Both the position numbers and the translations under genes were made by a program. The notes below the pieces were generated by a model. It saw only the letters and a program-made list of their open reading frames with translations, was not told the origin of the DNA and searched no databases. 27,377 nt of DNA from Macrostomum lignano (Eukaryota): positions 1 to 27,377 of the forward strand of contig NIVC01002795.1 of assembly GCA_002269645.1 (NCBI GenBank), given 5' to 3'. Below are positions 2,431 through 26,385 of the stretch, in pieces (the stretch's first letter is position 1; each line of letters starts with the position of its first letter).

Positions 2431-2938
2431 ATGACTGTGGGTGGCTCAGCTCTGCTTTGGCTGCTCCTGCTGACCAGCGGGTTGCTGGGGGCGTCAGAAC
2501 ATTGCCCGACAGTAGCGACCAGAGTCCTCAACAGTAAGCCAAGGATTGTAATCTACTCGCATTCCGAGTACGAGGCTGGCGAGAGCTACGACAGCCGAGC
2601 CAACTGCCTCTACAATGGCGGCGCACCCGAGCCAGCCGGCTACTGGTGGCGGATCACCTTCGAGAAGATCGAGCTGGAAACGTCCAGCACTTTTCAGCGG
2701 TGCAAGTACGACAATTTGACTGTGATGTACATGCTGAACGGGGCCAGGGAGACTCGGGTGCTGTGCGGCCGGCACTCCAATCTCGTGCTGCTGACTGACG
2801 CACCTTTCACACTTCGATTCGTGTCCGACTCCAGCGTGAACATGCGCGGCTTCAAGGTTTACTATGAGCAAGTCAGCCCGGTGGAGGCCGCGGCCATGAT
2901 CAGGAGAAATGAGATCAGCCCGGTTTTCCGGACCACAG
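2431..2938 (+). CDS. Gene A exon 1: signal peptide plus canonical CUB domain 1
   Basis: ATG at 2431; motifs Y....[43 protein letters not shown]; donor GTTTGT at 2939 (phase 1). Confidence 0.9.
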
Positions 2939-5900: not shown

Positions 5901-8900
5901 TGCGTGCACAGAGGCGATTCTCAAATTTTCACGTTTAAAACCCGCCATTGATGGAGTCCTGCACTGAGTCCTGGATTGAGTATTGGATTGAGTATTGGAT
6001 TGAGTATTGGATTGAGTATTGGATTGAGTATTGGATTGAGTCCTGGATTGAGTATTGGATTGAGTATTGGATTGAGTCCTGGATTGAGTCCTGGATTGAG
6101 TATTGGATTGAGTATTGGATTGAGTCCTGGATTGAGTCCTGGATTGAGTCCTGGATTGAGTCCTGGATTGAGTATTGGATTGAGTATTGGATTGAGTCCT
6201 GGATTGAGTCCTGGATTGAGTATTGGATTGAGTATTGGATTGAGTATTGGATTGAGTCCTGGATTGAGTCCTGGATTGAGTCCTGGATTGAGTATTGGAT
6301 TGAGTATTAGATTGAGTATTAGATTGAGTATTGGATTGAGTATTGGATTGAGTATTGGATTGAGTATTGGATTGAGTATTGGATTGAGTATTGGATTGAG
6401 TATTGGATTGAGTATTGGATTGAGTATTGGATTGAGTCCTGGATTGAGTATTGGATTGAGTATTAGATTGAGTATTAGATTGAGTATTGGATTGAGTATT
6501 GGATTGAGTCCTGGATTAAGTCCTGGATTGAGTCAATATCAAAACCTTAAATTCTTTTACACATTTTGATACGTTATACTCTACTACTCGTATATAGTAG
6601 CAAGAAAAGAATGCGAATAATGCGATATAAATTCTCATTACTTTTAGAGCCTCAGCAATGTATCCAGGTTTAAGCGGGCCCTGCGAGCCGAGGGTTGGCT
6701 TTCGATCCAGCGCGAGAGTCCTGCCGGACGAGGACGACCCCGAGGCAGTCGGCACGAGACGGATTTTCAGCGAGGACTTCTGCACGTTTGCCAACAACAA
6801 ACCTGTCGGCCTCTTCGTCGGCGATGTGAACGTGACAATCTCAACGAGGCGGCCTGAACTCAATCTCATGGGCTTTAACCTCACCATTTTCAACATTCCA
6901 AAGCCGAAGACGGGTGCGAATCCTGATTTAGATTCCAGATCTCTTCTCAGATTCCCGATCTCTTCTCAGATTCCCGATCTCTTCTCAGATTCCCGATCTC
7001 TTCTCAGATTCCCGATCTCTTGTCAGATTCCCGATCTCTTCTCAGATTCCCGATCTCTTCTCAGATTCCCGATCTCTTGTCAGATTCCCGATCTCTTCTC
7101 AGATTCCCTCCCGATCTCTTCTCAGATTCCCGATCTCTTCTCAGATTCCCGATCTCTTCTCAGATTCCCTCCCGATCTCTTCTCAGATTCCCTCCCGATC
7201 TCTTCTCAGATTCCCGATCTCTTCTCAGATTCCCGATCTCTTGTCAGATTCCCGATCTCTTGTCAGATTCCCGATCTCTTCTCAGATTCCCTCCCGATCT
7301 CTTCTCAGATTCCCGATCTCTTCTCAGATTCCCGATCTCTTGTCAGATTCCCGATCTCTTGTCAGATTCCCGATCTCTTCTCAGATTCCCTCCCGATCTC
7401 TTCTCAGATTCCCGATCTCTTGTCAGATTCCCGATCTCTTCTCAGATTCCCGATCTCTTCTCAGATTCCCTCCCGATCTCTTCTCAGATTCCCGATCTCT
7501 TCTCAGATTCCCGATCTCTTCTCAGATTCCCGATCTCTTCTCAGATTCCCGATCTCTTGTCAGATTCCCGATCTCTTCTCAGATTCCCTCCCGATCTCTT
7601 CTCAGATTCCCGATCTCTTGTCAGATTCCCGATCTCTTGTCAGATTCCCGATCTCTTCTCAGATTCCCTCCCGATCTCTTCTCAGATTCCCGATCTCTTC
7701 TCAGATTCCCGATCTCTCAGATTCCCGATCTCTTCTCAGATTCCCGATCTCTTCTCAGATTCCCTCCCGATCTCTTCTCAGATTCCCGATCTCTTCTCAG
7801 ATTCCCGATCTCTTCTCAGATTCCCGATCTCTTTTCAGATTCCCGATCTCTTCTCAGATTCCCGATCTCTTCTCAGATTCCCGATCTCTTCTCAGATTCC
7901 CGATCTCTTCTCAGATTCCCTCCCGATCTCTTCTCAGATTCCCAATCTCTTGTCAGATTCCCGATCTCTTGTCAGATTCCCGATCTCTTGTCAGATTCCC
8001 GATCTCTTCTCAGATTCCCGATCTCTTCTCAGATTCCCTCCCGATCTCTTCTCAGATTCCCGATCTCTTCTCAGATTCCCGATCTCTTCTCAGATTCCCG
8101 ATCTCTTCTCAGATTCCCGATCTCTTCTCAGATTCCCGATCTCTTCTCAGATTCCCGATCTCTTCTCAGATTCCCGATCTCTTCTCAGATTCCCGATCTC
8201 TTCTCAGATTCCCGATCTCTTGTCAGATTCCCGATCTCTCAGATTCCCGATCTCTTCTCAGATTCCCTCCCGATCTCTTCTCAGATTCCCGATCTCTTGT
8301 CAGATTCCCGATCTCTTCTCAGATTCCCAATCTCTTCTCAGATTCCCTCCCGATCTCTTCTCAGATTCCCGATCTCTTCTCAGATTCCCGATCTCTTCTC
8401 AGATTCCCTCCCGATCTCTTCTCAGATTCCCGATCTCTTCTCAGATTCCCGATCTCTTCTCAGATTCCCGATCTCTTCTCAGATTCCCGATCTCTTCTCA
8501 GATTCCCGATCTCTTCTCAGATTCCCGATCTCTTCTCAGATTCCCGATCTCTTCTCAGATTCCCGATCTCTTGTCAGATTCCCGATCTCTTCTCAGATTC
8601 CCGATCTCTTCTCGGATTCCCGATCTCTTCTCAGATTCCCAATCTCTTCTCAGATTCCCAATCTCTTCTCAGATTCCCGATCTCTCAGATTCCCGATCTC
8701 TTCTCAGATTCCCTCCCGATCTCTTCTCAGATTCCCGATCTCTTGTCAGATTCCCGATCTCTTCTCAGATTCCCAATCTCTTCTCAGATTCCCTCCCGAT
8801 CTCTTCTCAGATTCCCGATCTCTTCTCAGATTCCCGATCTCTTCTCAGATTCCCGATCTCTTTTCAGATTCCCGATCTCTTCTCAGATTCCCGATCTCTT

Positions 8901-11900
8901 CTCAGATTCCCGATCTCTTCTCAGATTCCCGATCTCTTCTCAGATTCCCTCCCGATCTCTTCTCAGATTCCCGATCTCTTCTCAGATTCCCGATCTCTTC
9001 TCAGATTCCCTCCCGATCTCTTCTCAGATTCCCGATCTCTTCTCAGATTCCCGATCTCTTCTCAGATTCCCGATCTCTTCTCAGATTCCCGATCTCTTCT
9101 CAGATTCCCGATCTCTTCTCAGATTCCCGATCTCTTCTCAGATTCCCGATCTCTTCTCAGATTCCCGATCTCTTGTCAGATTCCCGATCTCTTCTCAGAT
9201 TCCCGATCTCTTCTCGGATTCCCGATCTCTTCTCAGATTCCCAATCTCTTCTCAGATTCCCAATCTCTTCTCAGATTCCCGATCTCTCAGATTCCCGATC
9301 TCTTCTCAGATTCCCTCCCGATCTCTTCTCAGATTCCCGATCTCTTGTCAGATTCCCGATCTCTTCTCAGATTCCCAATCTCTTCTCAGATTCCCTCCCG
9401 ATCTCTTCTCAGATTCCCGATCTCTTCTCAGATTCCCGATCTCTCAGATTCCCGATCTCTTCTCAGATTCCCGATCTCTCAGATTCCCGATCTCTTCTCA
9501 GATTCCCGATCTCTTCTCAGATTCCCGATCTCTCAGATTCCCGATCTCTTCTCAGATTCCCGATCTCTTCTCAGATTCCCGATCTCTTCTCAGATTCCCA
9601 ATCTCTTCTCAGATTCCCGATCTCTTCTCAGATTCCCAATCTCTTCTCAGATTCCCGATCTCTTCTCAGATTCCCGATCTCTTCTCAGATTCCCAATCTC
9701 TTCTCAGATTCCCGATCTCTTCTCAGATTCCCAATCTCTTCTCAGATTCCCGATCTCTTCTCAGATTCCCAATCTCTTCTCAGATTCCCAATCTCTTCTC
9801 AGATTCCCGATCTCTTCTCAGATTCCCGATCTCTTCTCAGATTCCCAATCTCTTCTCAGATTCCCGATCTCTTCTCAGATTCCCGATCTCTCAGATTCCC
9901 GATCTCTTCTCAGATTCCCGATCTCTCAGATTCCCGATCTCTTCTCAGATTCCCGATCTCTTCTCAGATTCCCGATCTCTTCTCAGATTCCCGATCTCTT
10001 CTCAGATTCCCGATCTCTTCTCAGATTCCCGATCTCTTCTCAGATTCCCGATCTCTTCTCAGATTCCCGATCTCTCAGATTCCCGATCTCTCAGATTCCC
10101 GATCTCTTCTCAGATTCCCGATCTCTCAGATTCCCGATCTCTTCTCAGATTCCCGATCTCTCAGATTCTCGATCTCTCAGATTCTCGATCTCTTCTCAGA
10201 TTCCCGATCTCTCAGATTCTCGATCTCTCAGATTCCCGATCTCTCAGATTTCCGATCTCTCAGATTCCCGATCTCTCAGATTCTCGATCTCTCAGATTCC
10301 CAATCTCTCAGATTCCCGATCTCTCAGATTCCCGATCTCTCAGATTCCCGATCTTTCAGATTCTCGATCTCTCAGATTCCCAATCTCTCAGATTCCCGAT
10401 CTCTCAGATTCCCGATCTCTCAGATTCCCGATCTCTCAGATTCCCGATCTCTCAGATTCCCGATCTCTCAGATTCCCGATCTCTTCTCAGATTCCCGATC
10501 TCTCAGATTCCCGATCTCTCAGATTCTCGATCTCTCAGATTCCCGATCTCTCAGATTCCCGATCTCTTCTCAGATTCCCGATCTCTCAGATTCCCGATCT
10601 CTCAGATTCCCGATCTCTCAGATTCCCGATCTCTCAGATTCTCGATCTCTCAGATTTCCGATCTCTCAGATTCTCGATCTCTCAGATTCCCGATCTCTCA
10701 GATTCCCGATCTCTCAGATTCCCGATCTCTTCTCAGATTCCCGATCTCTCAGATTCCCGATCTCTTCTCAGATTCCCGATCTCTCAGATTCCCGATCTCT
10801 TCTCAGATTCCCGATCTCTCAGATTCCCGATCTCTCAGATTCCCGATCTCTCAGATTCCCGATCTCTTCTCAGATTCCCGATCTCTCAGATTCCCGATCT
10901 CTCAGATTCCCGATCTCTCAGATTCTCGATCTCTCAGATTCCCGATCTCTCAGATTCCCGATCTCTCAGATTCCCGATCTCTTCTCAGATTCCCGATCTC
11001 TCAGATTCCCGATCTCTCAGATTCCCGATCTCTTCTCAGATTCCCGATCTCTCAGATTCCCGATCTCTCAGATTCTCGATCTCTCAGATTCCCGATCTCT
11101 CAGATTCCCGATCTCTTCTCAGATTCCCGATCTCTCAGATTCCCGATCTCTCAGATTCTCGATCTCTCAGATTCCCGATCTCTCAGATTCTCGATCTCTC
11201 AGATTCCCGATCTCTCAGATTCCCGATCTCTCAGATTCTCGATCTCTCAGATTCCCGATCTCTCAGATTCCCGATCTCTTCTCAGATTCCCGATCTCTCA
11301 GATTCCCGATCTCTTCTCAGATTCCCGATCTCTCAGATTCCCGATCTCTTCTCAGATTCCCGATCTCTCAGATTCCCGATCTCTCAGATTCCCGATCTCT
11401 CAGATTCCCGATCTCTTCTCAGATTCCCGATCTCTCAGATTCCCGATCTCTCAGATTCCCGATCTCTCAGATTCTCGATCTCTCAGATTCCCGATCTCTC
11501 AGATTCCCGATCTCTCAGATTCCCGATCTCTCAGATTCCCGATCTCTCAGATTCTCAATCTCTCAGATTCTCAGATTCCCTTTTTGTAACCAACCGTTGT
11601 GGTTAATGAAATGAAAATGAAAGCACGTCTACATCGATATACTAAAAATTTTATGCTAAAGCTGCTGCTCAATTCCCGCAACCTCTTGCCTACTCAAGGC
11701 TGCTCAGTCGTCAACATCAGCACCCAGTACACCAGTGGCCAGGCCTTCAAGGTCTTCAGAATCGATGCTCAACCCGGCTGTGTAGTTGCCGAATTCCTGA
11801 AGCAAACCGGATATTCTGAGTCATATTCTGTGAGCCTCTGTCCATCCTCTGCCCCTTCCCTGTGTCCTTAGTTCCTTCCCTGTGTCCTCAGTTCCTTCCC

Positions 11901-14900
11901 TGTGTCATCAGTTCCTTCCCTGTGTCCTCTGCTTCTTCCCTGTGTCCTCTACTCCTTCCCTGTGTCCTTAGTTCCTTCCCTGTGTCCTCAGTTCCTTCCC
12001 TGTGTCCTTAGTTCCTTCCCTGTGTCCTCAGTTCCTTCCCTGTGTCCTCTGCTTCTTCCCTGTGTCCTTAGTTCTTTCCCTGTGTCCTCAGTTCCTTCCC
12101 TGTGTCCTCAGTTCCTTCCCTGTGTCCTTAGTTCCTTCCCTGTGTCCTTAGTTCCTTCCCTGTGTCCTTAGTTCTTTCCCTGTGTCCTCAGTTCCTTCCC
12201 TGTGTCCTTAGTTCCTTCCCTGTGTCATCAGTTCCTTCCCTGTGTCCTCTGCTTCTTCCCTGTGTCCTCTACTCCTTCCCTGTGTCCTTAGTTCCTTCCG
12301 TGTCCTCAGTTCCTTCCCTGTGTCCTTAGTTCCTTCCCTGTGTCCTCAGTTCCTTCCCTGTGTCCGCATTCAAATTACATTCCCAAACATCATACTTCTA
12401 CCGAGTAGGCATTATGGTTTCTCATTGCCCATTTCCAATTTTTAGCACACGATGCTTAAGGTGATCTTCGAGTTGACTTGCCACCAGGCCGGCCCCCGCG
12501 AGTCTCTCGACGTCATCAGCCAGCTGTTCGTCAACTCCGTCCGCTGCAACAGCACCAGTTTTATGTACGACTCGTGGAAATATCCTCTGCTGCTGAAGTT
12601 CCCGAGCAACAGCGCAGCCCATCTGGTCAGTAAAGTGATCTACAATTTCCCAGGTAAATTTTGCTGCGGCCAACTTAAACGATTGTTTTCGGGAAGCTCT
12701 GATTTAAATGGGATTACATGGGATTGAATGGGATTAAATAGGATTAAATGGGATTGAATATGATTAAATGGGATTGAATAGAATTAAATAGGATTAAGTG
12801 GGATTGAATGGGATTAAATGGGATTGAATGGGATTAAATAGGATTAAATGGGATTGAATAGGATTAAATGGGATTGAATGGGATTAAATAGGATTAAATG
12901 GGATTGAATAGAATTAAATAGGATTAAATGGGATTGAATATGATTAAATGGGATTGAATAGAATTAAATAGGATTAAGTGGGATTGAATGGGATTAAATG
13001 GGATTGAATGGGATTAAATAGGATTAAATGGGATTGAATAGGATTAAATGGGATTGAATGGGATTAAATAGGATTAAATGGGATTGAATAGAATTAAATA
13101 GGATTAAGTGGGATTGAATGGGATTAAATGGGATTGAATGGGATTAAATGGGATTGAATGGGATTGAATGGGATTAAATGGGATTGAATATGATTAAATG
13201 GGATTAAATGGGATTGAATGGGATTAAATGGGATTGAATGGGATTAAATAGGATTAAATGGGATTGAATGGGATTAAATAGGATTAAATGGGATTGAATG
13301 GGATTAAATGGGATTAAATGGGATTGAATATGATTAAATGGGATTAAATGGGATTGAATGGGATTAAATGGGATTAAATGGGATTGAATATGATTAAATG
13401 GGATTGAATGGAATTAAATAGGATTAAATGGGATTGAATGGGATTAAATGGGATTGAATATGATTAAATGGGATTAAATGGGATTGAATGGGATTAAATG
13501 GGATTAAATGGGATTGAATATGATTAAATGGGATTAAATGGGATTGAATAGGATTAAATGGGATTGAATGGGATTAAATAGGAATTAAATGGGATTGAAT
13601 GGAATTAAATAGGATTAAATGGGATTGAATGGGATTAAATGGGATTGAATATGATTAAATGGGATTAAATGGGATTGAATGGGATTAAATGGGATTGAAT
13701 GGGATTAAATAGGATTAAATGGGATTGAATGGGATTAAATAGGATTAAATGGGATTGAATGGGATTAAATGGGATTAAATGGGATTGAATGGGATTAAAT
13801 GGGATTGAATATGATTAAATGGGATTAAATGGGATTGAATAGGATTAAATGGGATTGAATGGGATTAAATGGAATCAAATAGGATTAAATGAGATTAAAT
13901 GGAATCAAACAGGATTAAATGAGATTAAATGGAATTAAATGCGATTAAATGGGATTGAATAGGATTAAATGGGATAAAATGGGATAAAATGGGATCGAAT
14001 GTGTTTGAATGGGATAAAATTGGATTGAATGGGATTAAATGGGATTGAATGGGATTAAATGGAATCAAATAGGATTAAATGAGATTAAATGGAATCAAAT
14101 AGGATTAAATGAGATTAAATGGAATTAAATGGGATTAAATGGGATTGAATGGGATAAAATGGGATTGAATGTGTTTGAATGGGATTACATGGGATTGAAT
14201 GGGATTGAATGGGATAAAATGGGATAAAATGGGATTGAATGTGTTTGAATGGGATAAAATTGGATTGAATGGGATTGAATGGGATTGAATGGGATTGAAT
14301 GGGATTGAATGGGATTAAATGGGATTGAATGGGATTGAATGGGATTGAATGGGATTGAATGGGATTGAATGGGATTGAATGGGATTGAATGGGATTGAAT
14401 GGGATTGAATGGGATTGAATAGGATTAAATGGGATTGAATGGGATAAAATGAGATTGAATTTTATTGAATGGGATTACATGGGATTGAATGGTATTGAAT
14501 GGGATTGAATGGGATTAAATGGGATTGAATGGGATTGAATGTGATTACATGGGATTAAATGGGATTAGCTAAATGGGATTAAAGGGGATTGAATTGGATC
14601 GAATGGGATTAAGTTTGATTAAATTGGATTGAATGGGATTGAGATGATTTGAATGGGATTGCATGGGTCTAAATGGAATTGAATGGGGTTTAATGGGGTT
14701 TAATGGAATTAAATGAGATTGAGTAAGATTAAATCTGATTAAAGGCGAATTATTAAACTAATTTACGCGCAACACTTCCTTGACCTGCAGTGGTGCAATC
14801 AATCTGCCAGAACCTGGACTCGCGGCCCAACCAGAACGACAACAGCACCTTCGGGAACATCCATCTGCCTCTATTTATTGATTCGAGAATTCTGCCGAAC

Positions 14901-17480
14901 TCCAAGAGGCACTACTCACAGATATCTTGCGGTTTCGACCTCGACTACAGGCCTGGTTACAGCATCCTGCTGAGGATCAGCCACAACCTGGGCTTTGAGG
15001 ATATCGACTTCTATTGCCACTCCAAGCTGTCTAGCAGAGACGTCAATCCCCATATTGTGCTCACCACCAGGCGGCGGGACTCGAACAGTCCGGGCAACTG
15101 GATTGAGGAGCAGCTGGAAATGTGCCACGGTTATTCCATCGGCTCGCTGGGCACCAAGTCCAGATTGCTGATTGACGGCTCTGTCGGCATCAGCTTGCTG
15201 GCCTTGAAAAACGACATGATGGAAAGGCTGGCTGGACCTGGGATGGACGCATTGCGTCAGATCTTCAACCTGACACAAATCAAGACCTTGAGTTTTATCA
15301 TCAGCTATGAGTACGGTGAGACTGAGATGAGATGGGTGGGCTCTCAGGTAGGTTTTCAGGTGGGCTCTCAGGTGGGCTCTCAGGTGGGCTCCTAGGTGGG
15401 CTCCTAGGTGGGCTCTCAGCTGGGCTCTCAGATGGGCTCCAGGTGGGCTCTCAGGTGGGCTCTCAGGTGGGCTCTCAGGTGGGCTCCAGGTGGGCTCTCA
15501 GGTGGGCTCTCAGGTGGGCTCTCAGGTGGGCTCTCAGGTGGGCTCTCAGGTGGGCTCTCAGGTGGGCTCTCAGGTGGGCTCTCAGGTGGGCTCTCAGGTG
15601 GGCTCTCAGGTGGGCTCCCAGGTGGGCTCTCAGGTGGGCTCTCAGGCGGATTTTCAGGTGGGCTCCCAGGTGGGCTCTCAGGTGGGCTCTCAGGTGGGCT
15701 CTCAGGTGGGCTCTCAGGTGGGCTCTCAGGTGGGCTCTCAGGTGGGTTTTCAGGTGGGCTCTCAGGTGGGCTCCCAGGTGGGCTCTCATGTGGCGCAGTC
15801 TTCAAGGTGAGATGGGTCTTGAAGGTGAGGTGGGTCTTGAAGGTGAGGTGGGTCTTGAAGGTGAGATGGGTCTTGAAGGTGAGATGGGTCTTGAAGGTGA
15901 GGTGGGTCTTGAAGGTGAGGTGGGTCTTCAATGTGAGGTGGGTCTTCAATTTGAGGTGGGTCTTCAAGGTGATGTGGGTCTTCCATGTGAGGTGGGTCTT
16001 GAAGGTGAGGTGGGTCTTGAAGGTGATGTGGGTCTTCAATTTGAGGTGGGTCTTCAAAGTGAGGTGTGTCTTCAAGGTGATGTGGGTCCCGAAGGTTGGG
16101 TCTTCAAGGTGAGGTGGTTATTTAAGGTGAGGTGGATTTTCATGGTGAGGAGGGCCTCTAAAGTTGGTTTACAACTATTCTCTAAGATGCGGCGGTAACC
16201 AAAAAACTCGCTCTGAACACAATCTCGCGCAGTGCCCTCCTGCCCGGAGCTGCAGTGCCGCTCCCTGAACAGTGGGCAGCCGGGCTGCCAGAACATTTCG
16301 GTCAGCAGCATGAGGCTGGAGGCTCAGCTGGCCAGGACGCCAGAGAGCAGGGCAGCCGCGGCATCCGACTGCAAGTGGAACATCCCCACCAGTACGGAGA
16401 TGCGGCAGGCCATGGACCGCGAATCGAACTCTTGGCTAGTGCGCTTGGAGCTGTCTAACTTTGATTTCAGCTGTCCCTGTCACGACTGCGACGCGTACGG
16501 CCAGCACATGACAGTCGGCCGGAAGGCAGCCGGGGCCGCCGCCGCCACCAGGAGTCTTGTGATCTGCGGCGACTACAGCTCCTCTAGCCGGGTGCTGTAC
16601 ATGGCGCTGACTGCCGACCTGCCCGACATTCAGATCAGCTACTCGGCCATCGAGACTGGAATTAATGTCAGCGTGACCTTCATTGATTGCAACCGGAATG
16701 CCAGCCTCAGACAGTGCCGCATGGCCAGGACTCAGGTCTGGGGTGCCAAGCAGTTCATGCTCAGCGGAAGGACTCCAGGTGAGACGCGCGCTGAGGGTCA
16801 CCTGCCTTGCGCTTTGTTCCCGATGAACAAATACCCGATAAGCCTGGTCTCTGATTTATTTAATTGCCTGCTACCTGTTTCCTGAGGATATGTGCCGGTG
16901 GTGCCTGGTTCCCAAGTACGACGTCTCGTATACCGGTGTTTCCCCGGTTCCCGGGTATACATATAGGTGGTTACCCGGTTCCCGAGTATACATACAGGTG
17001 GTTACCCGGTTCCCGGGAATACATACAGGTGGTTACCTGGTTCCCGAGTATACATACAGGTGGTTACCCGGTTCCCAAGTATAAATACCGGTGGTTACCC
17101 GGTTCCCGAGTATAAATACCGGTGGTTACCCGGTTCCCGAGTATATATACCGGTGGTTACCCGGTTCCCGAGTATAAATACCGGTGGTTACCCGGTTCCC
17201 GAGTATAAATACCGGTGTTTACCCGGCTCCCGAGTATAAATACCGGTGTTTACCCTTCTCCCGAGTATAAATACAACTTTACGACATTAACCACAACCCA
17301 TCGCCTGTTCCAGGTGGTCTGGTCTTTCTGGCCATCGTGCTGACTCTCCTGCTATTGGGCTGCCTGTTGTTCATCAACCGAGAGGCCGTTGGCAGCCGAG
17401 TTCACGCGGTGCTGCAGTTGCGACAGTCCCGGACTGAGGACACCCTGCAGCTGACGAGGGAGACTGCGTCGCAGGAATAG
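2431..17480 (+). CDS. Gene A: type I membrane protein with about 7 CUB/CUB-like domains (~1148 aa, 11 exons)
   Basis: Exons 2431-2938, 3347-3793, 4306-4521, 5081-5317, 5677-5872, 6648-6913, 11699-11829, 12446-12653, 14791-15315, 16233-16778, 17314-17480. All junctions are GT/AG with matching phases (1,1,1,1,2,1,0,1,1,1), and the total of 3447 nt is divisible by 3. Signal peptide [23 protein letters not shown] motifs, [21 protein letters not shown]. Confidence 0.85.
2958..3303. repeat. Intron 1: 26-bp repeat (GATAGATTAGCAATCCATTCAGTATA) in a ~120-bp higher-order unit carrying a triplicated acceptor-like motif
   Basis: Lines 3061 and 3181 are identical at 120-bp offset; TTTGGTTCCGCTCCCACAG occurs three times. 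Confidence 0.92.
3347..3793 (+). CDS. Gene A exon 2: CUB domain 2
   Basis: CTGAC branch point at 3332 and CCCGCAG acceptor; [36 protein letters not shown]; donor GTTAAT at 3794 (weak). Confidence 0.85.
3843..4250. repeat. Intron 2: degenerate 31/34-bp minisatellite (CATCAAGCTTCCAGTCTCCATCGTGCTTCAT)
   Basis: Visible tandem copies with a HindIII core; explains the S/H/Q-rich ORFs at 3788-4350. Confidence 0.92.
4306..4521 (+). CDS. Gene A exon 3: N-terminal half of CUB domain 3
   Basis: Acceptor CCCGCAG; QCPEKV...[28 protein letters not shown]; donor GTGAGT at 4522. Confidence 0.88.
4595..4990. repeat. Intron 3: 16-bp purine-rich minisatellite (GTGGTGAAGGAGGCTA)
   Basis: More than 20 visible copies with degenerate edges. 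Confidence 0.95.
5081..5317 (+). CDS. Gene A exon 4: C-terminal half of CUB domain 3
   Basis: Acceptor TCCTGCAG; [11 protein letters not shown]...RFCA...VQIKFQS...RGFELFY; donor GTAAGC at 5318. Confidence 0.88.
5352..5638. repeat. Intron 4: 23-bp C-rich minisatellite (ACCCCATGCCCGCCACCCCAAAC)
   Basis: About 12 visible copies; explains the Pro/His- and Gly/Trp-rich ORFs. Confidence 0.93.
5677..5872 (+). CDS. Gene A exon 5: N-terminal half of CUB-like domain 4
   Basis: Acceptor CCCGCAG (phase 1); GSCPQP...[21 protein letters not shown]; strong donor GTAAGT at 5873 (phase 2). Confidence 0.82.
5962..6534. repeat. Intron 5: 12-bp minisatellite with two interspersed variants (TGGATTGAGTAT / TGGATTGAGTCC)
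   Basis: About 47 copies; produces the WIEY/WIES and LSIG/LSPG pseudo-ORFs. Confidence 0.97.
6648..6913 (+). CDS. Gene A exon 6: C-terminal half of CUB-like domain 4
   Basis: Acceptor CTTTTAG at 6647 matches phase 2; PCEPRVGF...DFCT...VNVTIST...MGFNLTI; donor GTGCGA at 6914. Confidence 0.82.
6930..11580. repeat. Intron 6: 4.65-kb satellite of 19-bp CAGATTCCCGATCTCTTCT with 16-bp and 23-bp variants
   Basis: Roughly 250 units (length divided by unit size). The + strand lacks stop triplets, so all three + frames are open. Confidence 0.98.
11699..11829 (+). CDS. Gene A exon 7: start of degenerate CUB-like domain 5
   Basis: Weak acceptor CTCTTGCCTACTCAAG (phase 1); [11 protein letters not shown]...PGCVVAEF; donor GTGAGC at 11830 (phase 0) matches exon 8. 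Confidence 0.65.
11861..12365. repeat. Intron 7: 20-bp pyrimidine-rich minisatellite (TGTGTCCTTAGTTCCTTCCC)
   Basis: About 25 visible copies, three per 60-nt line. Confidence 0.96.
12446..12653 (+). CDS. Gene A exon 8: remainder of degenerate CUB-like domain 5
   Basis: Acceptor ATTTTTAG (phase 0); [12 protein letters not shown]...VRCNSTS...LLLKFPS; donor CAG|GTAAAT at 12654. Confidence 0.8.
12705..14740. repeat. Intron 8: 2-kb 10-bp satellite (GGGATTGAAT / GGGATTAAAT)
   Basis: About 200 units, more homogeneous internally and decaying toward the 3' end. Confidence 0.97.
14791..15315 (+). CDS. Gene A exon 9: divergent CUB-like domain 6
   Basis: Acceptor CTTGACCTGCAG (phase 1); [19 protein letters not shown]...FYCH...MCH...SFIISYEY; donor GTGAGA at 15316. 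Confidence 0.82.
15336..15787. repeat. Intron 9 array a: 12-bp CAGGTGGGCTCT
   Basis: About 36 copies; gives the RWAL/GSQV/GGLS pseudo-ORFs. Confidence 0.96.
15800..16140. repeat. Intron 9 array b: 18-bp GAAGGTGAGGTGGGTCTT
   Basis: About 18 copies directly abutting array a and sharing its GGTGGG core. Confidence 0.94.
16233..16778 (+). CDS. Gene A exon 10: membrane-proximal CUB-like domain 7
   Basis: Acceptor CTCGCGCAG (phase 1); DCKWNIP...[16 protein letters not shown]...VICG...IQISYS...INVSVTF; donor CAG|GTGAGA at 16779. Confidence 0.85.
16930..17272. repeat. Intron 10: 31-bp minisatellite (GGTGGTTACCCGGTTCCCGAGTATAAATACC)
   Basis: About 11 visible copies. Confidence 0.93.
17314..17480 (+). 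CDS. Gene A exon 11: TM helix plus ~33-aa cytoplasmic tail
   Basis: Acceptor CTGTTCCAG (phase 1); [55 protein letters not shown]; TAG at 17478-17480. Not in the ORF track. Confidence 0.85.
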
Positions 17481-17545
17481 AGGATGGAGATAACCGGACA
17501 CTGCCGTCTCCCCACCTCTGCATACAATTTACTTTGCTGCTGACA

Positions 17546-18174
17546 CCTCTCCTCTCCTCTCCTCTCCTCTCCTCTGCTCTGCTCTCCTCTGCTCTCCTCT
17601 CCTCTCCTCTCCTCTCCTCTCCTCTCCTCTCCTCTCCTCTCCTCTCCTCTCCTCTCCTCTCCTCTCCTCTCTTCTCCTCTCCTCTCCTCTCCTCTCCTCT
17701 CCTCTCCTCTCCTCTCCTCTCCTCTCCTCTCCTCTCCTCTCTTCTCCTCTCCTCTCCTCTCCTCTCCTCTCCTCTCCTCTCCTTTCCTCTCCTCTCCTCT
17801 CCTCTCCTCTCCTCTCCTCTCCTCTCCTCTCCTCTCCTCTCCTCTCTTCTCCTCTCCTCTCCTCTCCTCTCCTCTCTTCTCCTCTCCTCTCCTCTCCTCT
17901 CCTCTCCTCTCCTCTCCTCTCCTCTCCTCTCCTCTCCTCTCCTCTCCTCTCCTCTCCTCTCCTCTCTTCTCTTCTCCTCTCCTCTCCTCTCCTCTCCTCT
18001 CCTCTCCTCTCCTCTCCTCTCCTCTCTTCTCCTCTCCTCTCCTCTCCTCTCCTCTCCTCTCCTCTCCTCTCCTCTCCTCTCCTCTCCTCTCTCTCCTCTC
18101 CTCTCTCTCTCCTCTCTCTCCTCTCCTCTCCTCTCCTCTCCTCTCCTCTCCTCTCTTCTCCTCTCCTCTCCTCC
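17546..18174. repeat. (CTCCT)n pentanucleotide microsatellite, ~630 bp, just 3' of the gene A stop
   Basis: Directly visible; source of the GEERR/LLSSP pseudo-ORFs. Confidence 0.98.
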
Positions 18175-18647
18175 ATTTCCTCTCTTCACTTCGCTTTGCT
18201 ATCTTCCCTCGCCCACTTGTCTCCCCAGTCCCCTCTCTCCAGCTGCTCACAGCCTCAGCTCCACACCAATATTTCACAGCCAGCAGCAGTGCAATCATTC
18301 AACTGCAACAGTAAACTGCACATTTTTGCTAAAATACACGATAACTTTATTTTACGACAAACGCCACCGGTTCTCCAACAACGCGAAGCCACATTGACGT
18401 CAATTTGATTGATACTTAATTAACAATCTGTTGTCATAGGAACGCGCTCCATCAGCCTAAAAGTAAAACTAAACTTTTAAACAAATCACTAATCACTTCT
18501 GCGAATTTTGATCTTCAATTAGTGCAAATTAACAATACTGAACAACACCTTAATTATCTTTTTCCTTATTGAATATGTAATCATTGGCTGATCTTGATTC
18601 TCCAACTGAATTATTATTATATTTGCGACTAACTTTATGCGATATTC

Positions 18648-18653
18648 AATAAA
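18648..18653 (+). promoter_or_regulatory. Candidate polyadenylation signal of gene A
   Basis: AATAAA in AT-rich sequence with a T-rich downstream stretch. Confidence 0.35.
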
Positions 18654-18777
18654 ACTAACGCAAATTTACATTCGATAAAGTTTATTTGCTCGCTTACTAT
18701 GAGTAACTCTGTGACAGACTTCAAGTTCGTTTATTTATTCGTGTTGTGCTTACCTGACAGACTGGTTCGGAGCGTCT

Positions 18778-19180
18778 AACTGATCACTCCAGCACCCAAC
18801 TGATCACTCTAGCAGTCAACTGATCACTCCAGCCCACAACTGATCACTCTAGCACCCAACTGATCACTCTAGCAGTCAACTGATCACTCTAGCAGTCAAC
18901 TGATCACTCTAGCACCCAACTGATCACTCTAGCACCCAACTGATCACTCTAACACCCAACTGATCACTCTAGCAGTCAACTGATCACTCTAGCACCCAGG
19001 TGATCACTCCAGCACCCAACTGATCACTCTAGCACCCAGAGGATCACTCTAGCAGTCAACTGATCACTCTAGCACCCAACTGATCACTCTAGCAGTCAAC
19101 TGATCACTCTAGCACCCAACTGATCACTCTAGCACCCAACTGATCACTCTAGCACCCAACTGATCACTCTAGCACCCAAG
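18778..19180. repeat. Intergenic 20-bp minisatellite (TGATCACTCTAGCACCCAAC / ...AGCAGTCAAC), about 20 copies
   Basis: Three units per 60-nt line; two interspersed variants. Confidence 0.97.
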
Positions 19181-19711
19181 TGACTCGCCAGAAACAGTTA
19201 CCAAAAAAGCAGAATCCGAAAAGCTACGATTTAGTTTCGCACCCCGCAGCTACCGCACCGCATCGGATCCCCGAACCCTGGATTTCATTTTCCTCCCCAT
19301 TTTCATCCCCATCGCTTCGTCACGCTGCCAGTAGCCATGTGAGAGGGGGATCGGGGATAAAATATTGACCACGGCAATCCGGTGTGCATCTGGGGCAGGA
19401 CAGGACAGGCCAGTCAGCGAAATGAACGCACCGAACGCAGTTCTTTCACCCACTGTTGAACTCTGCCTTATTGCGGAATTCGCTGGATGGGTGTGTGTGT
19501 GCGTGTGTGTGTGGGAGGAGAGCTTCGCCAAAGCCGTTCCCCGAGGCTCTCGGCACACTTCCAACCGCCTCCCGTTGATTATCGAAGAGCACTGGCGGGC
19601 GGACCGGATCACCCGATGCCCAGTTTTAATCCGCAATTTAATTTCGCGACACGCTATCAGCTTAGCGATACAGAGACAGACAGAGAGAGAAACACAGATA
19701 AGCACGGCTGG

Positions 19712-19714
<3 letters not shown>

Positions 19715-19758
<44 letters not shown>
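19715..19758. repeat. (GA)n microsatellite upstream of the gene B ATG; short (GT)n at about 19490-19511
   Basis: Directly visible. Confidence 0.95.
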
Positions 19759-19761
<3 letters not shown>

Positions 19762-19808
19762 ACAGTTCGAAAATTCGACCCACCTCGGCGCACCGTTCCG
19801 GAGAGGAG

Positions 19809-20028
19809 ATGAGCAGAACGCCTGCCACTGGATCGCACAGGCTGGTCGGCAAGAGTCGTCGCTTAGTCCGTCAGCGGGACATTGAGCAGTCGCAGCAGCA
19901 CTCGACCGAGGAGCGTCTGGCCCGGCCGCTCACCAGACAGCGCGGCGAGGAGGCCGAAGTCGCCGATGTCGACTTTGTGTTGCAGGAGGCGCCGCAACGA
20001 ATCGTCGTGCGAGTCAGCCTGGTCACGC
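19809..20028 (+). CDS. Gene B exon 1: basic/acidic low-complexity N-terminus leading into the domain (…RIVVRVSLVT)
   Basis: ATG at 19809; donor GTGAGC at 20029 (phase 1) matches exon 2. The start codon choice is uncertain. Confidence 0.65.
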
Positions 20029-23000
20029 GTGAGCGCCGATTCTCCTATTGGCGCTCAGCTCTCCCTTTTTAGCGCCTGATTCTACCATTCTACCCTTTGG
20101 CGCCTCATTCTATTGATATCAACTGGCGCCTCATTCTACTCAGAGGCGCCTCATTCTATTGATATCAACTGGCGCCTCATTCTATTGATATCAACTGGCG
20201 CCTCATTCTATTGATATCAACTGGCGCCTCATTCTATTGATATCAACTGGCGCCTCATTCTATTGATATCAACTGGCGCCTCATTCTATTGATATCAACT
20301 GGCGCCTCATTCTATTGATATCAACTGGCGCCTCATTCTATTGATATCAACTGGACCCTCATTCTATTGATATCAACTGGACCCTCATTCTATTGATATC
20401 AACTGGCGCCTCATTCTATTGATATCAACTGGCGCCTCATTCTATTGATATCAACTGGCGCCTCATTCTATTGATATCAACTGGCGCCTCATTCTATTGA
20501 TATCAACTGGCGCCTCATTCTACTCAGAAGCGCCTCATTCTACCAACCTGCACCTATTCTATCAACCTGCACCTATTCTACCAACCTGCACCTATTCTAC
20601 CAACCTGCACCTATTCTACCAACCTGCACCTATTCTACCAACTTACGCCTTATTATACCAATTGGCGCCTCATTCTACCAATTGGTGCCTCATTCTACCA
20701 ATTGGCGCCTCATTCTACCAATTGGCGCCTCACCATTATTAGCGCCCCACTGTCCCCAGGCCTCATGATACGCGCCGCCCTCTCAAAATCCCAGTGGTCT
20801 GCTGCGGCCAGAAGACGGTCTGGTCCTACCGCACCCACGGCCTCAGCCGGCTGGGCCAGACGGACCTGCTGCTCCTCCTTGAGCACATCGCCATCGACAA
20901 CGCCGCCCCAGCCGATCCGGTCGCTCTATTCGCTGGCGTCCTCAAGAAGGCCAAGGAGGGCAGCACGGTGGGCGACATGGACCACACGGTATTCCAGGCC
21001 AGCGAGCGCGGATTCCTCGGAAGCCAGTACACCGGCGGGGTGCTGTACTTCTTGGAGAGCGGCCAGTGCTTTCACGGCCTCGTACACCCGGCCGACTTTG
21101 GCAGCCTGCTGGCCTGCCGGCTGGTGCACAGGCGGGAGCTGCCCTACCTGCTGCACTCGCCAACACGGCTGCTGCTGAGGCTGGGCGCCGAGGACGGCGT
21201 GTATCCGTGCGGCCTCATCAGCAACCGCTACCGGCCGCCAGTGTTCTACGAACCGGCCCGATCGGTCATGTCCATGTTCAGGGTAAGGAGATTCGCTAGT
21301 CTTAGACAGCTAAACTCGCATATCCCCATCTGCACAATGTCTCCCCTTTCTGCACTTGAAAATGCGCTAGACTCCCCTATTGGCGCTAGACTCCCCTATT
21401 GGCGCTAGACTCCCCTATTGGCGCTAGACTCCCCTATTGGCGCTAGACTCCCCTATTGGCGCTAGACTCCCCTATTGGCGCTAGACTCCCCTATTGGCGC
21501 TAGACTCCCCTATTGGCGCTAGACTCCCCTATTGGCGCTAGACTCCCCTATTGGCGCTAGACTCCCCTATTGGCGCTAGACTCCCCTATTGGCGCTAGAC
21601 TCCCCTATTGGCGCTAGACTCCCCTATTGGCGCTAGACTCCCCTATTGGCGCTAGACTCCCCTATTGGCGCTAGACTCCCCTATTGGCGCTAGACTCCCC
21701 TATTGGCGCTAGACTCCCCTATTGGCGCTAGACTCCCCTATTGGCGCTAGACTCCCCTATTGGCGCTAGACTCCCCTATTGGCGCTAGACTCCCCTATTG
21801 GCGCTAGACTCCCCTATTGGCGCTAGACTCCCCTATTGGCGCTAGACTCCCCTATTGGCGCTAGACTCCCCTATTGGCGCTAGACTCCCCTATTGGCGCT
21901 AGACTCCCCTATTGGCGCTAGACTCCCCTATTGGCGCTAGACTCCCCTATTGGCGCTAGACTCCCCTATTGGCGCTAGACTCCCCTATTGGCGCTAGACT
22001 CCCCTATTGGCGCTAGACTCCCCTATTGGCGCTAGACTCCCCTATTGGCGCTAGACTCCCCTATTGGCGCTAGACTCCATCTTATTAGCGCTAGACTTCC
22101 CTATTAGCGCTAGACTTCCCTATTAGCGCTAGACTTCCCTATTAGCGCTAGACTCCATCTTATTAGCGCTAGACTCTCCTATTAGCGCTGGTTCTGCGCG
22201 AACCTTCAGGAGGCCGTCCCGCACCTGAGCGAAGGCCTGGTGCCGCGGCTGCGCGACTGCAACCTGACGCTGGAAAGCAACGGCATCGTCGTGGTGTCGA
22301 TCTCTGGCCGGCGCCAGGCCGACCTGGCCAGCCTGCTCAGCGTGTACGCTCCGGACACCGATGGAGTGCTGGCGCTGGCTGGCGAGCTCTGCCAGTCAGC
22401 CGATGCGCACCTGGTTGCCAGGGAGTCGCCTGGAGGCGAATTTGAAACCGTCCTGTTCTCCGCTGCAGGACGACCGCAGATCTGGCCGGCTGGGGGACTG
22501 CCGGCCACGGCTGGGGTGTCTGTTGGGGTGAGTGCTGTCCGGATGGAGGACAGAGGCTGGGGTTGATGCTGAGGGTGAGTGCTGTCCGAATAGAGGACTG
22601 AGGCTGGGGTGTCTGCAGGGGGTGAGTGCTGTCCGGATGGAGGACTGAGGCTGGGGTGTCTGCAGGGGATGAGTGCTGTCCGGATAGAGGACTGAGGCTA
22701 GGGTGTCTGCAGGGGGTGAGTGCTGTCCGGGTGGGTGTTATTGCAAGAAAAGTACATTTATTCGTGATGTCTCCCCACCAAAAAATTTAGCGCCTGCAGT
22801 CACTGGCCTCGGCTTTATAGCACTGTCCACTCGACTGGGGGCAGCGGATCAACAGGGCTGCTTGGCGGCCATCGTGGAAGACGGTCTTGGCGTTATCTGC
22901 AGCCGGCAGGACATGTGGAGCCTACTGCAGGTGAGAACTTGCAAGTCCTGCAGCATCATCACTCCTGCATCATCATCACTCCTGCACCATCATCACTCCT

Positions 23001-23269
23001 GCAGCATCATAACTCCTGCAGCATCATCACTCCTGCAGCATCATCACTCCTGCACCATCATCACTCCTGCACCATCATCACTCCTGCACCATCATCACTC
23101 CTGCACCTGTATCCTGCATCGCTCGATCATCAAACCAAAAATCTCGCAGAGCCTGAACGAAGCCGAAGACTTTGTGCTGCCACTCGACTGGCTGTTCTTG
23201 CACGACCGACGCGAACCAATGCGAAGTTCCAGTATCCGGTTTGTATGGCGCCACCTGCCTGGGGAGTGA
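19809..23269 (+). CDS. Gene B: SARA/endofin (ZFYVE9/ZFYVE16) C-terminal-domain protein (DUF3480-like), apparently without FYVE domain (~425-442 aa, 5 exons)
   Basis: Exons 19809-20028, 20795-21282, 22210-~22527, ~22800-22930, 23150-23269. Recognised family motifs: WSYRTHGLSRLGQTDLLLLL (cf. WCFTTKGMHAVGQ.E.V.LL), FLGSQYTGGVLY (FLGSKEHGGFLY), PTRLLLRLGAEDGVYPCGLISNRYRPPVF ([29 protein letters not shown]), ADAHLV (ADSHLV), AIVEDG (SIVEDG), SLLQSLNEAEDF (SLRQALREMKDF). The comparison sequences are from memory, not a search. The exon 3/4 junction has a 1-nt phase conflict. Confidence 0.8.
20075..20730. repeat. Gene B intron 1: 26-bp repeat (GGCGCCTCATTCTATTGATATCAACT) changing into 19-bp and 20-bp derivatives
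   Basis: Visible switch to GCACCTATTCTACCAACCT at about 20550 and to GGCGCCTCATTCTACCAATT at about 20660. Confidence 0.95.
20795..21282 (+). CDS. Gene B exon 2: core of the SARA C-terminal region
   Basis: Acceptor ATCCCAG, donor AGG|GTAAGG at 21283; carries the strongest SARA motifs (RLGAE, FLGS..GG.LY). Confidence 0.9.
21364..22189. repeat. Gene B intron 2: near-perfect 19-bp minisatellite (GGCGCTAGACTCCCCTATT), about 43 copies
   Basis: Directly visible; degenerate in the last ~6 copies. Confidence 0.98.
22210..22527 (+). CDS. Gene B exon 3
   Basis: Acceptor CCTTCAG (phase 0); EAVPHLSEGLVPRL...GVLALAGELCQSADAHLVARE...FETVLFS. The 3' boundary lies inside a repeat and is uncertain. Confidence 0.8.
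22509..22730. repeat. Gene B intron 3: 47-bp repeat spanning the exon 3 donor (GCTGGGGTGTCTGCAGGGGGTGAGTGCTGTCCGGATGGAGGACTGAG)
   Basis: GTGAGT at 22528, 22575, 22622 and 22716; mutated to ATGAGT at 22669. Confidence 0.88.
22800..22930 (+). CDS. Gene B exon 4
   Basis: Acceptors TTTAG (22790) or CTGCAG (22799); VTGLGFIALS...LAAIVEDGLGV...WSLLQ; donor CAG|GTGAGA at 22931. Confidence 0.8.
22950..23106. repeat. Gene B intron 4: 17-bp repeat (GCATCATCACTCCTGCA)
   Basis: About 9 visible copies. Confidence 0.93.
23150..23269 (+). CDS. Gene B exon 5 (apparent last exon)
   Basis: Acceptor TCTCGCAG (phase 0); SLNEAEDFVLPLDWLF...IRFVWRHLPGE*. Confidence 0.75.
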   Translation, partial: SLNEAEDFVLPLDWLFLHDRREPMRSSSIRFVWRHLPGE

Positions 23270-24478: not shown

Positions 24479-26385
24479 GTGAGCCCTACTGAATCTGTTC
24501 ACTGCTAACATAGCAGCTCTGACTAGGTGAGCCCTACTGAATCTGTTCACTGCTAACATAGCAGCTCTGACTAGGTGAGCCCTACTGAATCTGTTCACTG
24601 CTAACATAGCAGCACTGACTAGGTGAGCCCTACTGAATCTGTTCACTGCTAACATAGCAGCACTGACTAGGTGAGCCCTACTGAATCTGTTCACTGCTAA
24701 CATAGCAGCTCTGACTAGGTGAGCCCTACTGAATCTGTTCACTGCTAACATAGCAGCTCTGACTAGGTGAGCCCTACTGAATCTGTTCACTGCTAACATA
24801 GCAGCACTGACTAGGTGAGCCCTACTGAATCTGTTCACTGCTAACATAGCAGCTCTGACTAGGTGAGCCCTACTGAATCTGTAGCACTGACTAGACGACC
24901 CCAACCAGCCTTAACCTGCAGAATAGAGGGACTGGCGTGAAGCATTGCGGACCGTAGCTTGTAGGCCTAGTCCATCTCATAATTCACTGGAATGCTAAAC
25001 TGGAATGCCTCGGATGACGGATGACGGGCAGCCAGAAAGCTCATAGTTGGAAATAGAAAATCAATAATTATCGTGAGTTTTCTGTTGACGATTCGTCCCT
25101 ACGAGAAACGACGATCGTAAAAAGAGCTCGTACGAGCTACATCCTTACCTGACTTTCCAGTGGCGTCAGTGAGACGACGTACTGGACTGGCGTCCACAGG
25201 GCCGCTCGCACCAGCCCGGCAGACAGGGTGTTCGCCTGGCGCAGCCAGACCAGCCAGCTGTACGTCTCCAGCACCGACGTGAGCCCGTCTAGCGAAGTCT
25301 TCACCAGCACGGAGGAAGACCCAACAGTGGGTGTGATCACGGACACCACAATCAACGTGACTAATTGGAACTCGATAAAAGTAGATAACAGCGGCTACGC
25401 CATCTGCATGTGCGTGTGTCCGATATCCAACCTGACCTGCTGCCCAGCACCGGCTTCTGGCTACACCTGCGCCAACTCGAGCGACGGTCGCTCCTTTTGC
25501 TTTCGACGTGGCGACTCCAAAAAGAAGTACTGGGAGGCGCCGACCATGTGCAGCCTGGCCAGCGGAGAGACGCTGATTGATCTGACTGAGACCGCTGCTC
25601 GAGTGGCCTTTCATGCGTACGTTTCACTGTACACAGTCTCTGGTTCTTTTTCCCTTTATGGATAATAATAATTAGAAAAACCCCTTTCCAGTGTTTTCAA
25701 CACCTTCAAGGCCGGTTGTCATGACACCTGCCTGATGGCTTTCGAGGAGCTGCCGTACAGGTTCAACGATAGCTATGGGCCGAAACTGCTTGCGGAAGGT
25801 TTCCCTTTGAAGGAGGGATACTTGAAGCAGAAAACAGACGATGCCAGGTACGGAATTACCATTGAAAAAGACTCTGGCACAGGTGGAATCAGGTACCTGG
25901 AAGAGAGGGACACCAGCGGGGGTTCTGGCCAGTTTGTATGCACTGCCACACCTGTAGAAACGACTACAACTACTACAACTACTACGCCGACTACCACAAC
26001 TACATCAACTACCACAACAACTACGCCGACTACCACAACAACTGCATCGACTACCACAACAACTGCATCGACTACCACAACAACTACTACGCCGACTACC
26101 ACAACAACTACACCGACTACCACAACTACTACGCCGACTACCACTACAATTGCGCCGAGTACTACAACCACACCTACTATCCCCACCCCGATAGCATCGA
26201 CTGCTACCAAGCAGGCTTCAGCTGTCACTCCGCTGTCAGAGGAGCAAGTCGTGGCCATTAACATTCAAAACTACGAGAATTCAAAAGAGAAGGCGACATT
26301 CTATTTGGTCCCTGTTGTGTTTCTGGTTCTGGCAGTGCTGATTGCTTATTACTTTGGCAGGCTTGCTTATCAAATGGGCGTCTAA
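24228..26385 (+). CDS. Gene C: type I membrane protein with two divergent C-type-lectin-like domains, Thr-rich mucin-like stalk, TM helix and ~8-aa tail (~466 aa, 3 exons)
   Basis: Exons 24228-24478, 25161-25616, 25692-26385; phases 2 and 2 match; 1401 nt is divisible by 3. Signal peptide MLQRSQLTELAALWTVCAIILSAG; C..DRCY...YC and YWTG...FAW...C pattern; second unit C....FCF...YWEA..MC...ETLIDL; TM FYLVPVVFLVLAVLIAYYFG. The lectin-fold call rests on Cys/Trp spacing only. Confidence 0.75.
24447..24894. repeat. 48-bp tandem repeat of the gene C exon 1/intron 1 junction (32 nt exon + 16 nt intron), 9 copies plus a partial one
   Basis: Unit CTGTTCACTGCTAACATAGCAGC[A/T]CTGACTAG|GTGAGCCCTACTGAAT starts at 24447 and recurs every 48 nt to 24831. 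Confidence 0.97.
25161..25616 (+). CDS. Gene C exon 2: rest of CTLD-like domain 1 and start of domain 2
   Basis: Acceptor CCTGACTTTCCAG (phase 2); GVSETTYWTGVHR...VFAW...YAIC; donor GTACGT at 25617. A small internal intron near 25412-25447 cannot be excluded. Confidence 0.78.
25692..26385 (+). CDS. Gene C exon 3: end of domain 2, poly-Thr/Pro stalk, TM helix, tail
   Basis: Acceptor CCCCTTTCCAG after a 75-nt intron (phase 2); in-frame ACN-codon repeats at about 25960-26180; hydrophobic helix; TAA at 26383-26385. Confidence 0.88.

Follow-up and report, generated by a model that had tools for sequence, protein, structure and literature searches.

A short Macrostomum lignano protein predicted to consist of the SARA/endofin two-lobed core without FYVE and Smad-binding domains

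We analysed a stretch of 27,377 nucleotides from the flatworm Macrostomum lignano (contig NIVC01002795.1; this whole stretch is called the window below), which carries at positions 19809-23269 of the plus strand a gene related to the C-terminal part of SARA (ZFYVE9) and endofin (ZFYVE16). These two proteins are textbook FYVE-tethered endosomal adaptors, and little is understood of what their large conserved C-terminal region does. We conclude, with a probability of about 0.7, that the window holds a separate gene for a predicted protein of 425 amino acids made of a basic, disordered N-terminus of about 50 residues and the complete two-lobed core of the SARA/endofin family, and nothing more. 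The gene is a member of a small M. lignano family of short SARA-core proteins, whose other member is Mlig026443, and a comparison of the two sequences indicates that the short architecture is common to at least two diverged genes of this worm.

Domain content, predicted fold and paralogue

The gene has five exons, and all of its introns are canonical GT-AG introns. A UniProt entry from M. lignano (A0A1I8GCD8, 420 amino acids, "DUF3480 domain-containing protein") was 99-100% identical to the coding pieces when compared exon by exon, and the gene product is thus already in the databases as an uncharacterised protein. The spliced product matched the Pfam family SARA_C (PF11979) with an E value of 3.6e-24 and a score of 85.9 bits (cut-off 25), over profile positions 7-204 of 353 only, and no other Pfam family was found on it at E<=1. 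In a phmmer search the identity with the family core was about 30% (E about 1e-33). When 1.84 billion representatives were searched exhaustively with HMMER, 217 relatives were returned, of which 123 had E<=1e-10, and the aligned part of the window protein comprised residues 62 to 395, approximately, which is the core only. Typical relatives are 1300-1600 amino acids long; their FYVE motif precedes the aligned region by 220-300 residues, and about 170 further residues follow that region. By Pfam, a canonical member is composed of FYVE, SARA (the Smad-binding domain) and SARA_C 1-352; the Smad-binding domain (PF11409) was present in two of the relatives that we analysed (P0014 and P0019).

Searches for the missing domains gave consistent negative results. 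The FYVE zinc finger (PF01363) had no Pfam match on the gene model, and no FYVE signature was found in the six frames of the whole window, either with regular expressions (R[RK]HHCRxCG and RVC..C) or by tblastn with two FYVE probes, which were taken from human EEA1 and HRS. When 14 full-length relatives were used as tblastn queries with E values up to 10, matches were obtained in exons 2-4 only, without similarity to FYVE, the Smad-binding domain or the terminal subdomain anywhere in the window, including the part downstream of the stop codon. The protein ends about 170 residues short of the canonical SARA/endofin end, and the terminal subdomain that is absent corresponds to Pfam positions 205-353, approximately, and to residues 360-531 of 4BKW, the crystal structure of the human ZFYVE9 C-terminal region. 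The limits of PF11979 do not coincide with those of the structural domains: its first position falls about 110 residues into the two-lobed core, and its last one lies in a separate subdomain of about 170 residues. For this reason complete core-only proteins look like partial Pfam matches.

A preliminary description of this DNA, made from its letters, had proposed at the same coordinates a SARA/endofin C-terminal gene, with about 65 low-complexity residues ahead of the SARA-C motifs and without FYVE and Smad-binding regions. The five exons and the Pfam match agree with this, as do the Pfam, regular expression and tblastn results over the window; family homology begins at about residue 52-62, and residues 1-48 are predicted to be disordered. 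The early stop noted there, before the last region of the family, is also borne out, as the protein ends at the core boundary and a paralogue stops at the same position.

The structure was predicted with AlphaFold2 from the UniProt model (P0001) and a 35-sequence alignment; this model carries 19 wrong residues in a loop, and the confidence (predicted local distance difference test, pLDDT) is low at residues 321-340. The prediction had a mean pLDDT of 84.6 and a predicted template modelling score of 0.83, with residues 50-420 folded and residues 1-48 disordered (pLDDT below 50). The final strands, at residues 389-397 and 405-415, had pLDDT values of about 88-91. The best Foldseek match in the PDB was 4BKW (E=5.6e-30, TMq 0.69, root-mean-square deviation 3.1 Å, 364 aligned columns). 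The sequence alignment covers residues 55-359 of the 531 residues of 4BKW, and the remaining residues, about 170, are the separate subdomain. All 12 invariant columns of our alignment A1 are kept in the window protein (W83, G89, Q95, E188, R198, L203, G204, P211, R220 and E369-D370-G371), and the last alignment column of the flatworm proteins is also that of bacterial homologues of 366 amino acids. The predicted protein is a complete two-lobed module and not a broken domain, because the whole of residues 50-420 folds in the model, matches 4BKW and ends at the column of the bacterial homologues. The earlier word "truncated" does not suit such a compact and complete predicted fold.

The next Foldseek matches were full-length SUFU structures (4BL9, 4BLA, 4BLB and 4KMD), with E values from 4e-9 to 2e-6, a probability of 1.00 and about 400 columns each, followed by the SUFU N-domain 1M1L (E=3e-4, TMt 0.50). 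The long SUFU alignments had a low overall TM-score (about 0.3) and a root-mean-square deviation of about 16 Å, which we read as a different orientation of the lobes in the predicted model. The fold resembles both lobes of SUFU, yet no sequence similarity was detectable: no SUFU family was found in Pfam at E<=1, and a profile search of the PDB found 4BKW and no SUFU chain.

The paralogue (P0152) is Mlig026443g1/g2 (PAA61454.1 / PAA88677.1), a protein of 467 amino acids that is 55% identical to the window protein. It comes from the Mlig_3_7 assembly, which was annotated with the help of RNA-seq, spliced-leader and poly(A) data (PMC5730564), and we rebuilt its exon structure on its genomic locus (L001). 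Both genes have the start motif MS..L..K.RLVRQ (the N-terminal motif reads MSKAARSPLKLAKARLVRQKEVQDQQ in the paralogue versus MSRTPATGSHRLVGKSRRLVRQRDIEQSQQ in the window gene), the same intron positions and phases and the same stop position. Exon 1 ends with ACGC/gtgag in phase 1 in both genes (the slash marks the exon boundary here and below), the next exon begins with ag/TGGTCTGC, the junction after ATGTTCA(A or G)G, followed by gt, is in phase 0, and the last exon is 120 nucleotides long including the stop codon. We consider the short, FYVE-less architecture to be real because the paralogue has the same start, introns, phases and stop. The ratio of nonsynonymous to synonymous substitution rates (dN/dS) between the two genes (NG86, dS about 1) was 0.34 for the core, which has therefore been under purifying selection, and 0.84 for the N-terminal 52 residues.

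The paralogue differs from the window gene in a disordered linker that is about 45 residues longer and in its neighbourhood, since it adjoins a C2-domain gene and no CUB gene. It also has an extra phase-1 intron after KKAKEG (L001 12500-13041), inside the region homologous to exon 2 of the window gene; because this intron is present in Mlig026443 and absent from the window gene, it was gained or lost since the duplication.

The junction of exons 3 and 4

Several observations weigh against a separate gene for the full protein. The window as written does not encode it; six gene models of the ML2 annotation (P0009-P0013 and P0156) join the SARA-core gene to the upstream CUB/transmembrane gene; no NCBI protein of Mlig_3_7 clusters with the window gene; and the analogy with SUFU comes from the fold, with no sequence-level link found and no partner known.

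The first of these comes from a conflict of phase. Exon 3 ends with GTT GGG/GTGAGT in phase 0, and both possible acceptors of exon 4 need phase 1, which is the phase of the corresponding junction of the paralogue before VTGL (V codon split G/TG). Read as it stands in the window, the mRNA is 1277 nucleotides long and stops early after ATAGVSVGSLASAL, giving 344 amino acids. Adding one G, for the analysis only, to the run of four G at the exon 3 donor restored the phase-1 junction (V codon G/TC) and gave the protein of 425 amino acids. A 47-nucleotide tandem repeat starts inside exon 3, so that intron 3 holds four further copies of the splice donor (GGGGGTGAGTGC). The first unit of this repeat is one G shorter than the rest, and the later units read GGGGG. 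Another genomic copy was modelled with the intact junction ATAGVSVGVTGLGF (P0006), and the UniProt model bypasses the phase break by a pseudo-intron of 14 nucleotides that does not start with GT. Alternative junctions of exons 3 and 4 (an acceptor at 22791, a phase-0 acceptor after AAG and the donors in the 47-nucleotide repeat) were tried and rejected, none being both canonical and in frame, and reading through the exon 3 donor meets a TGA.

PacBio-type assemblies tend to miscount homopolymer runs. We regard an assembly error as the probable cause of the one-base break and a truly frameshifted copy as the less probable one, because the ML2 assembly is PacBio-based, has only 32% of its bases error-free and holds fewer intact open reading frames than Mlig_3_7 (PMC5730564). 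If the deficit of one base were real, the window copy would be a pseudogene, its product of 344 amino acids would be without the end of the C-lobe, and the other copies and the paralogue would carry the function. The clash of phases and the early stop that the window shows as written fit a pseudogene, as do the 100% identity of the UniProt model, from an older annotation, to the window across the stretch of four G, the many redundant copies in the genome (PMC5730564) and the missing Mlig_3_7 protein. However, everything else in the gene is intact (all five exons are open, and every GT-AG site and invariant residue is kept), the defect lies in a G homopolymer of an assembly with the error rate given above, and the P0006 copy has an unbroken junction. 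On balance a pseudogene seems doubtful to us. The preliminary description had mentioned a real frameshift, together with a lack of expression, as a sign of a pseudogene; a one-base phase defect is indeed present, at a position that had gone unnoticed there. The separate gene for the 425-residue protein, with one G missing from the assembly, is the reading that we keep in what follows. The features of the locus are listed in Table 1.

Table 1. Features of the SARA-core gene and its surroundings (positions in the window)
Feature	Position	Strand	Description
Last exon of multi-CUB gene	17314..17480	+	Transmembrane helix, 30-residue tail, stop TAG 17478-80
AG acceptor	19764..19765	+	Joins the upstream CUB/transmembrane gene in frame in ML2 gene models
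Exon 1	19809..20028	+	Start codon, disordered basic N-terminus (residues 1-50), first core strand; donor GTGAGC, phase 1
Exon 2	20795..21282	+	N-lobe of core (VCCGQKTVW...SVMSMFR), matched by canonical SARAs in tblastn, E down to 1e-27; acceptor cag/TGGTCTGC, donor GTAAGG
Exon 3	22210..22527	+	First half of C-lobe; phase 0 end at GGG/GTGAGT
47-nucleotide tandem repeat	22509..22734	+	4.8 copies; first unit is the 3' end of exon 3 and the donor
Run of four G	22525..22528	+	At exon 3 donor; one more G restores the phase-1 junction
Exon 4	22800..22930	+	TGLGFIAL...DMWSLLQ, with invariant VEDG motif; acceptor tgcag/TCACTGG needs phase 1
Exon 5	23150..23269	+	SLNEAEDF...IRFVWRHLPGE, last two core strands; stop TGA 23267-69; 120 nucleotides including stop

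Neighbouring genes and limits of the gene

The upstream gene (window 2431-17480, plus strand) encodes a multi-CUB, single-pass membrane protein and covers at least 15 kb, with introns filled with repeats; CUB matches were found at 2431-2946, 3397-3798 and 4329-4601. The six fused ML2 models (P0009, P0010, P0011, P0012, P0013 and P0156) splice its CUB and transmembrane exons to the SARA-core gene by joining position 17467 to 19766. If they were correct, the core would be the cytoplasmic tail of the multi-CUB protein, and the transmembrane helix would replace FYVE as an anchor. The donor at 17468-69 and the acceptor at 19764-65 are compatible in phase, and the frame is open from this acceptor to the ATG. 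However, this donor, the sole frame-compatible one in the last CUB exon, is weak (GC/GTCGCA) and fits the consensus only at its GT, whereas the other donors of the gene and of the paralogue start with GTGAG or GTAAG, except for one GTGCG in the paralogue. The in-frame TAG of the CUB gene lies five codons past the donor. Moreover, the paralogue has the same conserved start methionine, with in-frame stops 12-37 codons upstream of its ATG and no called gene within 10 kb upstream, and the fused models belong to the ML2 annotation, which is prone to errors, and contain many frameshifts of their own. Because the donor is very weak and stands five codons before the CUB stop, the fused models are probably an artefact, and we consider the fusion very improbable. 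If it were true, it would be a surface receptor with a SARA/SUFU-like adaptor tail and a transmembrane anchor in place of the binding of FYVE to phosphatidylinositol 3-phosphate (PI3P), a CUB-SARA-core architecture that none of the described SARA relatives has.

About 7% of M. lignano transcripts are multi-gene precursors that are resolved by spliced-leader trans-splicing (PMC5730564). The SARA-core gene may share a primary transcript with the upstream CUB gene, from which such trans-splicing at an AG just 5' of the ATG would release it, and this is a plausible explanation of the fused models; the AG at 19764-65 could be the spliced-leader acceptor. The preliminary description had raised the possibility that upstream FYVE exons are spliced in at this AG. 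It is used in the ML2 models, as suggested, but the exons that it brings in are CUB and transmembrane exons and not FYVE exons.

The downstream gene (window 25228-26385, plus strand) contains an exon for a cysteine-containing ectodomain, a long threonine-rich, mucin-like stretch and a transmembrane helix (FYLVPVVFLVLAVLIAYYFG). A Pfam search of this gene at E<=0.01 gave nothing but one weak match below the cut-off. The SARA-core gene therefore stands between a multi-CUB transmembrane gene and a threonine-rich single-pass membrane gene, in keeping with the earlier placement between two surface-receptor genes.

The gene model could also be incomplete and represent the 3' part of a canonical SARA, with FYVE and Smad-binding exons outside the window or with C-terminal exons downstream. 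Two features speak for this: the window ends 4.1 kb past the stop codon, and the reading frame 5' of the ATG at 19809 is open for about 150 codons. However, the upstream 17 kb are occupied by the unrelated multi-CUB gene on the same strand, the window is devoid of similarity to FYVE, the Smad-binding domain or the C-terminal subdomain, and the RNA-seq-guided Mlig_3_7 paralogue has the same start and stop. An incomplete model is thus scarcely credible.

The DNA of the window is eukaryotic and rich in tandem repeats, and each intron of the SARA-core gene is mostly a tandem repeat array. Huge arrays are found in introns and intergenic DNA at window positions 6930-11547 (19-nucleotide unit, 252 copies), 12704-14743 (20/30-nucleotide unit, 100 copies), 17546-18184 (CCTCT, 128 copies) and 21364-22189 (19-nucleotide unit, 43 copies), and they create long spurious open reading frames of up to 1643 amino acids on the plus strand.

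Relatives and possible function

SARA and endofin share with the window protein a homologous core and the same C-terminal fold. They have, in contrast to it, the FYVE and Smad-binding domains, an N-terminal region of 700-1100 residues and the terminal subdomain. Short forms named "ZFYVE9-like" were found in the nemerteans Lineus longissimus (XP_064651837.1, 510 amino acids) and Tubulanus polymorphus (XP_074656422.1, 489 amino acids). Like the window protein, they are without FYVE and Smad-binding domains and consist of the core and a short tail (Pfam positions 7 to about 228). The Tubulanus form starts with MGNCC, a motif of the myristoylation/palmitoylation type, whereas the flatworm proteins start with MS and have no such motif. 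The window protein fits this class of stand-alone cores, with a disordered N-terminus, no FYVE or Smad-binding domain and no more than about 70 residues beyond the last core strand.

Homologues of the core were also found in bacteria, where they are rare: only two loci were obtained among 185,579 species genomes, in metagenome-assembled genomes of a member of the Gemmataceae (MDB5310235.1, 366 amino acids; L003 2944-4044) and of a member of the Gemmatimonadales (L004 4001-4573). They share with the window protein the limits of the core, the end column and the invariant W, G..GQ, R..LG, P and EDG, but differ from it in having about 26% identity, no introns and their own N-terminal motif M..W.R.FGR. 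A profile search of a set of 5.8 billion proteins with alignment A1 yielded M. lignano copies only among its best 8000 candidates. The idea of a unique derived truncation, put forward in the preliminary description, does not hold: a second M. lignano paralogue has the same architecture, short forms occur in nemerteans and the core occurs alone in bacteria. The locus is thus not unique, with an uncharacterised entry in the databases and similar short forms in other animals.

In neighbour-joining trees the two M. lignano genes paired with a bootstrap value of 100%. This pair grouped at 13% with the nemertean short forms, at 14% with Schistosoma and at 36% with the bacteria, the last grouping being probably due to long-branch attraction. 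Orthology with the nemertean short forms is not supported at 13%, and since the bootstrap values are only 13-36%, the trees do not tell an old spiralian paralogue from a flatworm-specific loss.

Other shortened or rearranged relatives were observed. SARA orthologues of the eriophyoid mites Aceria tosichella and Fragariocoptes setiger (P0104, P0111-P0114, P0126 and P0157-P0193) are 650-880 amino acids long; they keep FYVE and are without the Smad-binding domain and, in most of those examined, the terminal subdomain. Three of them (P0104, P0112 and P0114) had been candidates for a flatworm SARA and were rejected as mite proteins. The shortening of the mite SARAs is independent of the flatworm short forms. 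A protein of Schistosoma margrebowiei (P0147, CAH8650236.1, 1102 amino acids) has SARA_C and no Pfam FYVE or Smad-binding domain, and flatworms may have lost FYVE more widely. A EukProt protein of 989 amino acids (P0131) starts with MGNSCC and has RING and UBA domains joined to the SARA core.

By analogy of its fold with SUFU, the window protein is probably a peptide- or protein-binding adaptor. Between the two lobes of SUFU a short GLI peptide is held as a strand, as in 4BLB and 4KMD, which we take to be SUFU-GLI structures, whereas no GLI-type partner is known for the window protein. The SUFU-like fold therefore provides a concrete hypothesis, namely that the core clamps a peptide between its lobes. 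The titles and abstracts returned by our literature searches included no paper on DUF3480, only irrelevant ones for 4BKW and, for the ZFYVE9-SUFU fold, clinical and omics papers only.

Because it has no FYVE/PI3P anchor, lipidation motif or transmembrane segment, the window protein would be cytosolic or recruited through a partner. In the absence of the Smad-binding domain it cannot present Smads, and its partners need not match those of SARA. The C-terminal region of SARA reportedly contacts the TGF-beta type I receptor (a result ascribed to Tsukazaki et al. in 1998), and the corresponding region of endofin is said, by Seet and Hong, to bind TOM1. The window protein may serve as an adaptor or may compete for the binding partners of the core; the "untethered dominant modulator of TGF-beta" of the preliminary description is one version of this view and is speculation.

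Since RNA interference and transgenesis both work in M. lignano, this worm offers a way to study what the core does apart from the other domains; its amenability to transgenesis is described in PMC5730564. The window gene and its paralogue show that in animals the two-lobed core can occur by itself, in agreement with the nemertean and bacterial forms, and that neither the FYVE finger nor the Smad-binding motif nor the last subdomain has to accompany it.

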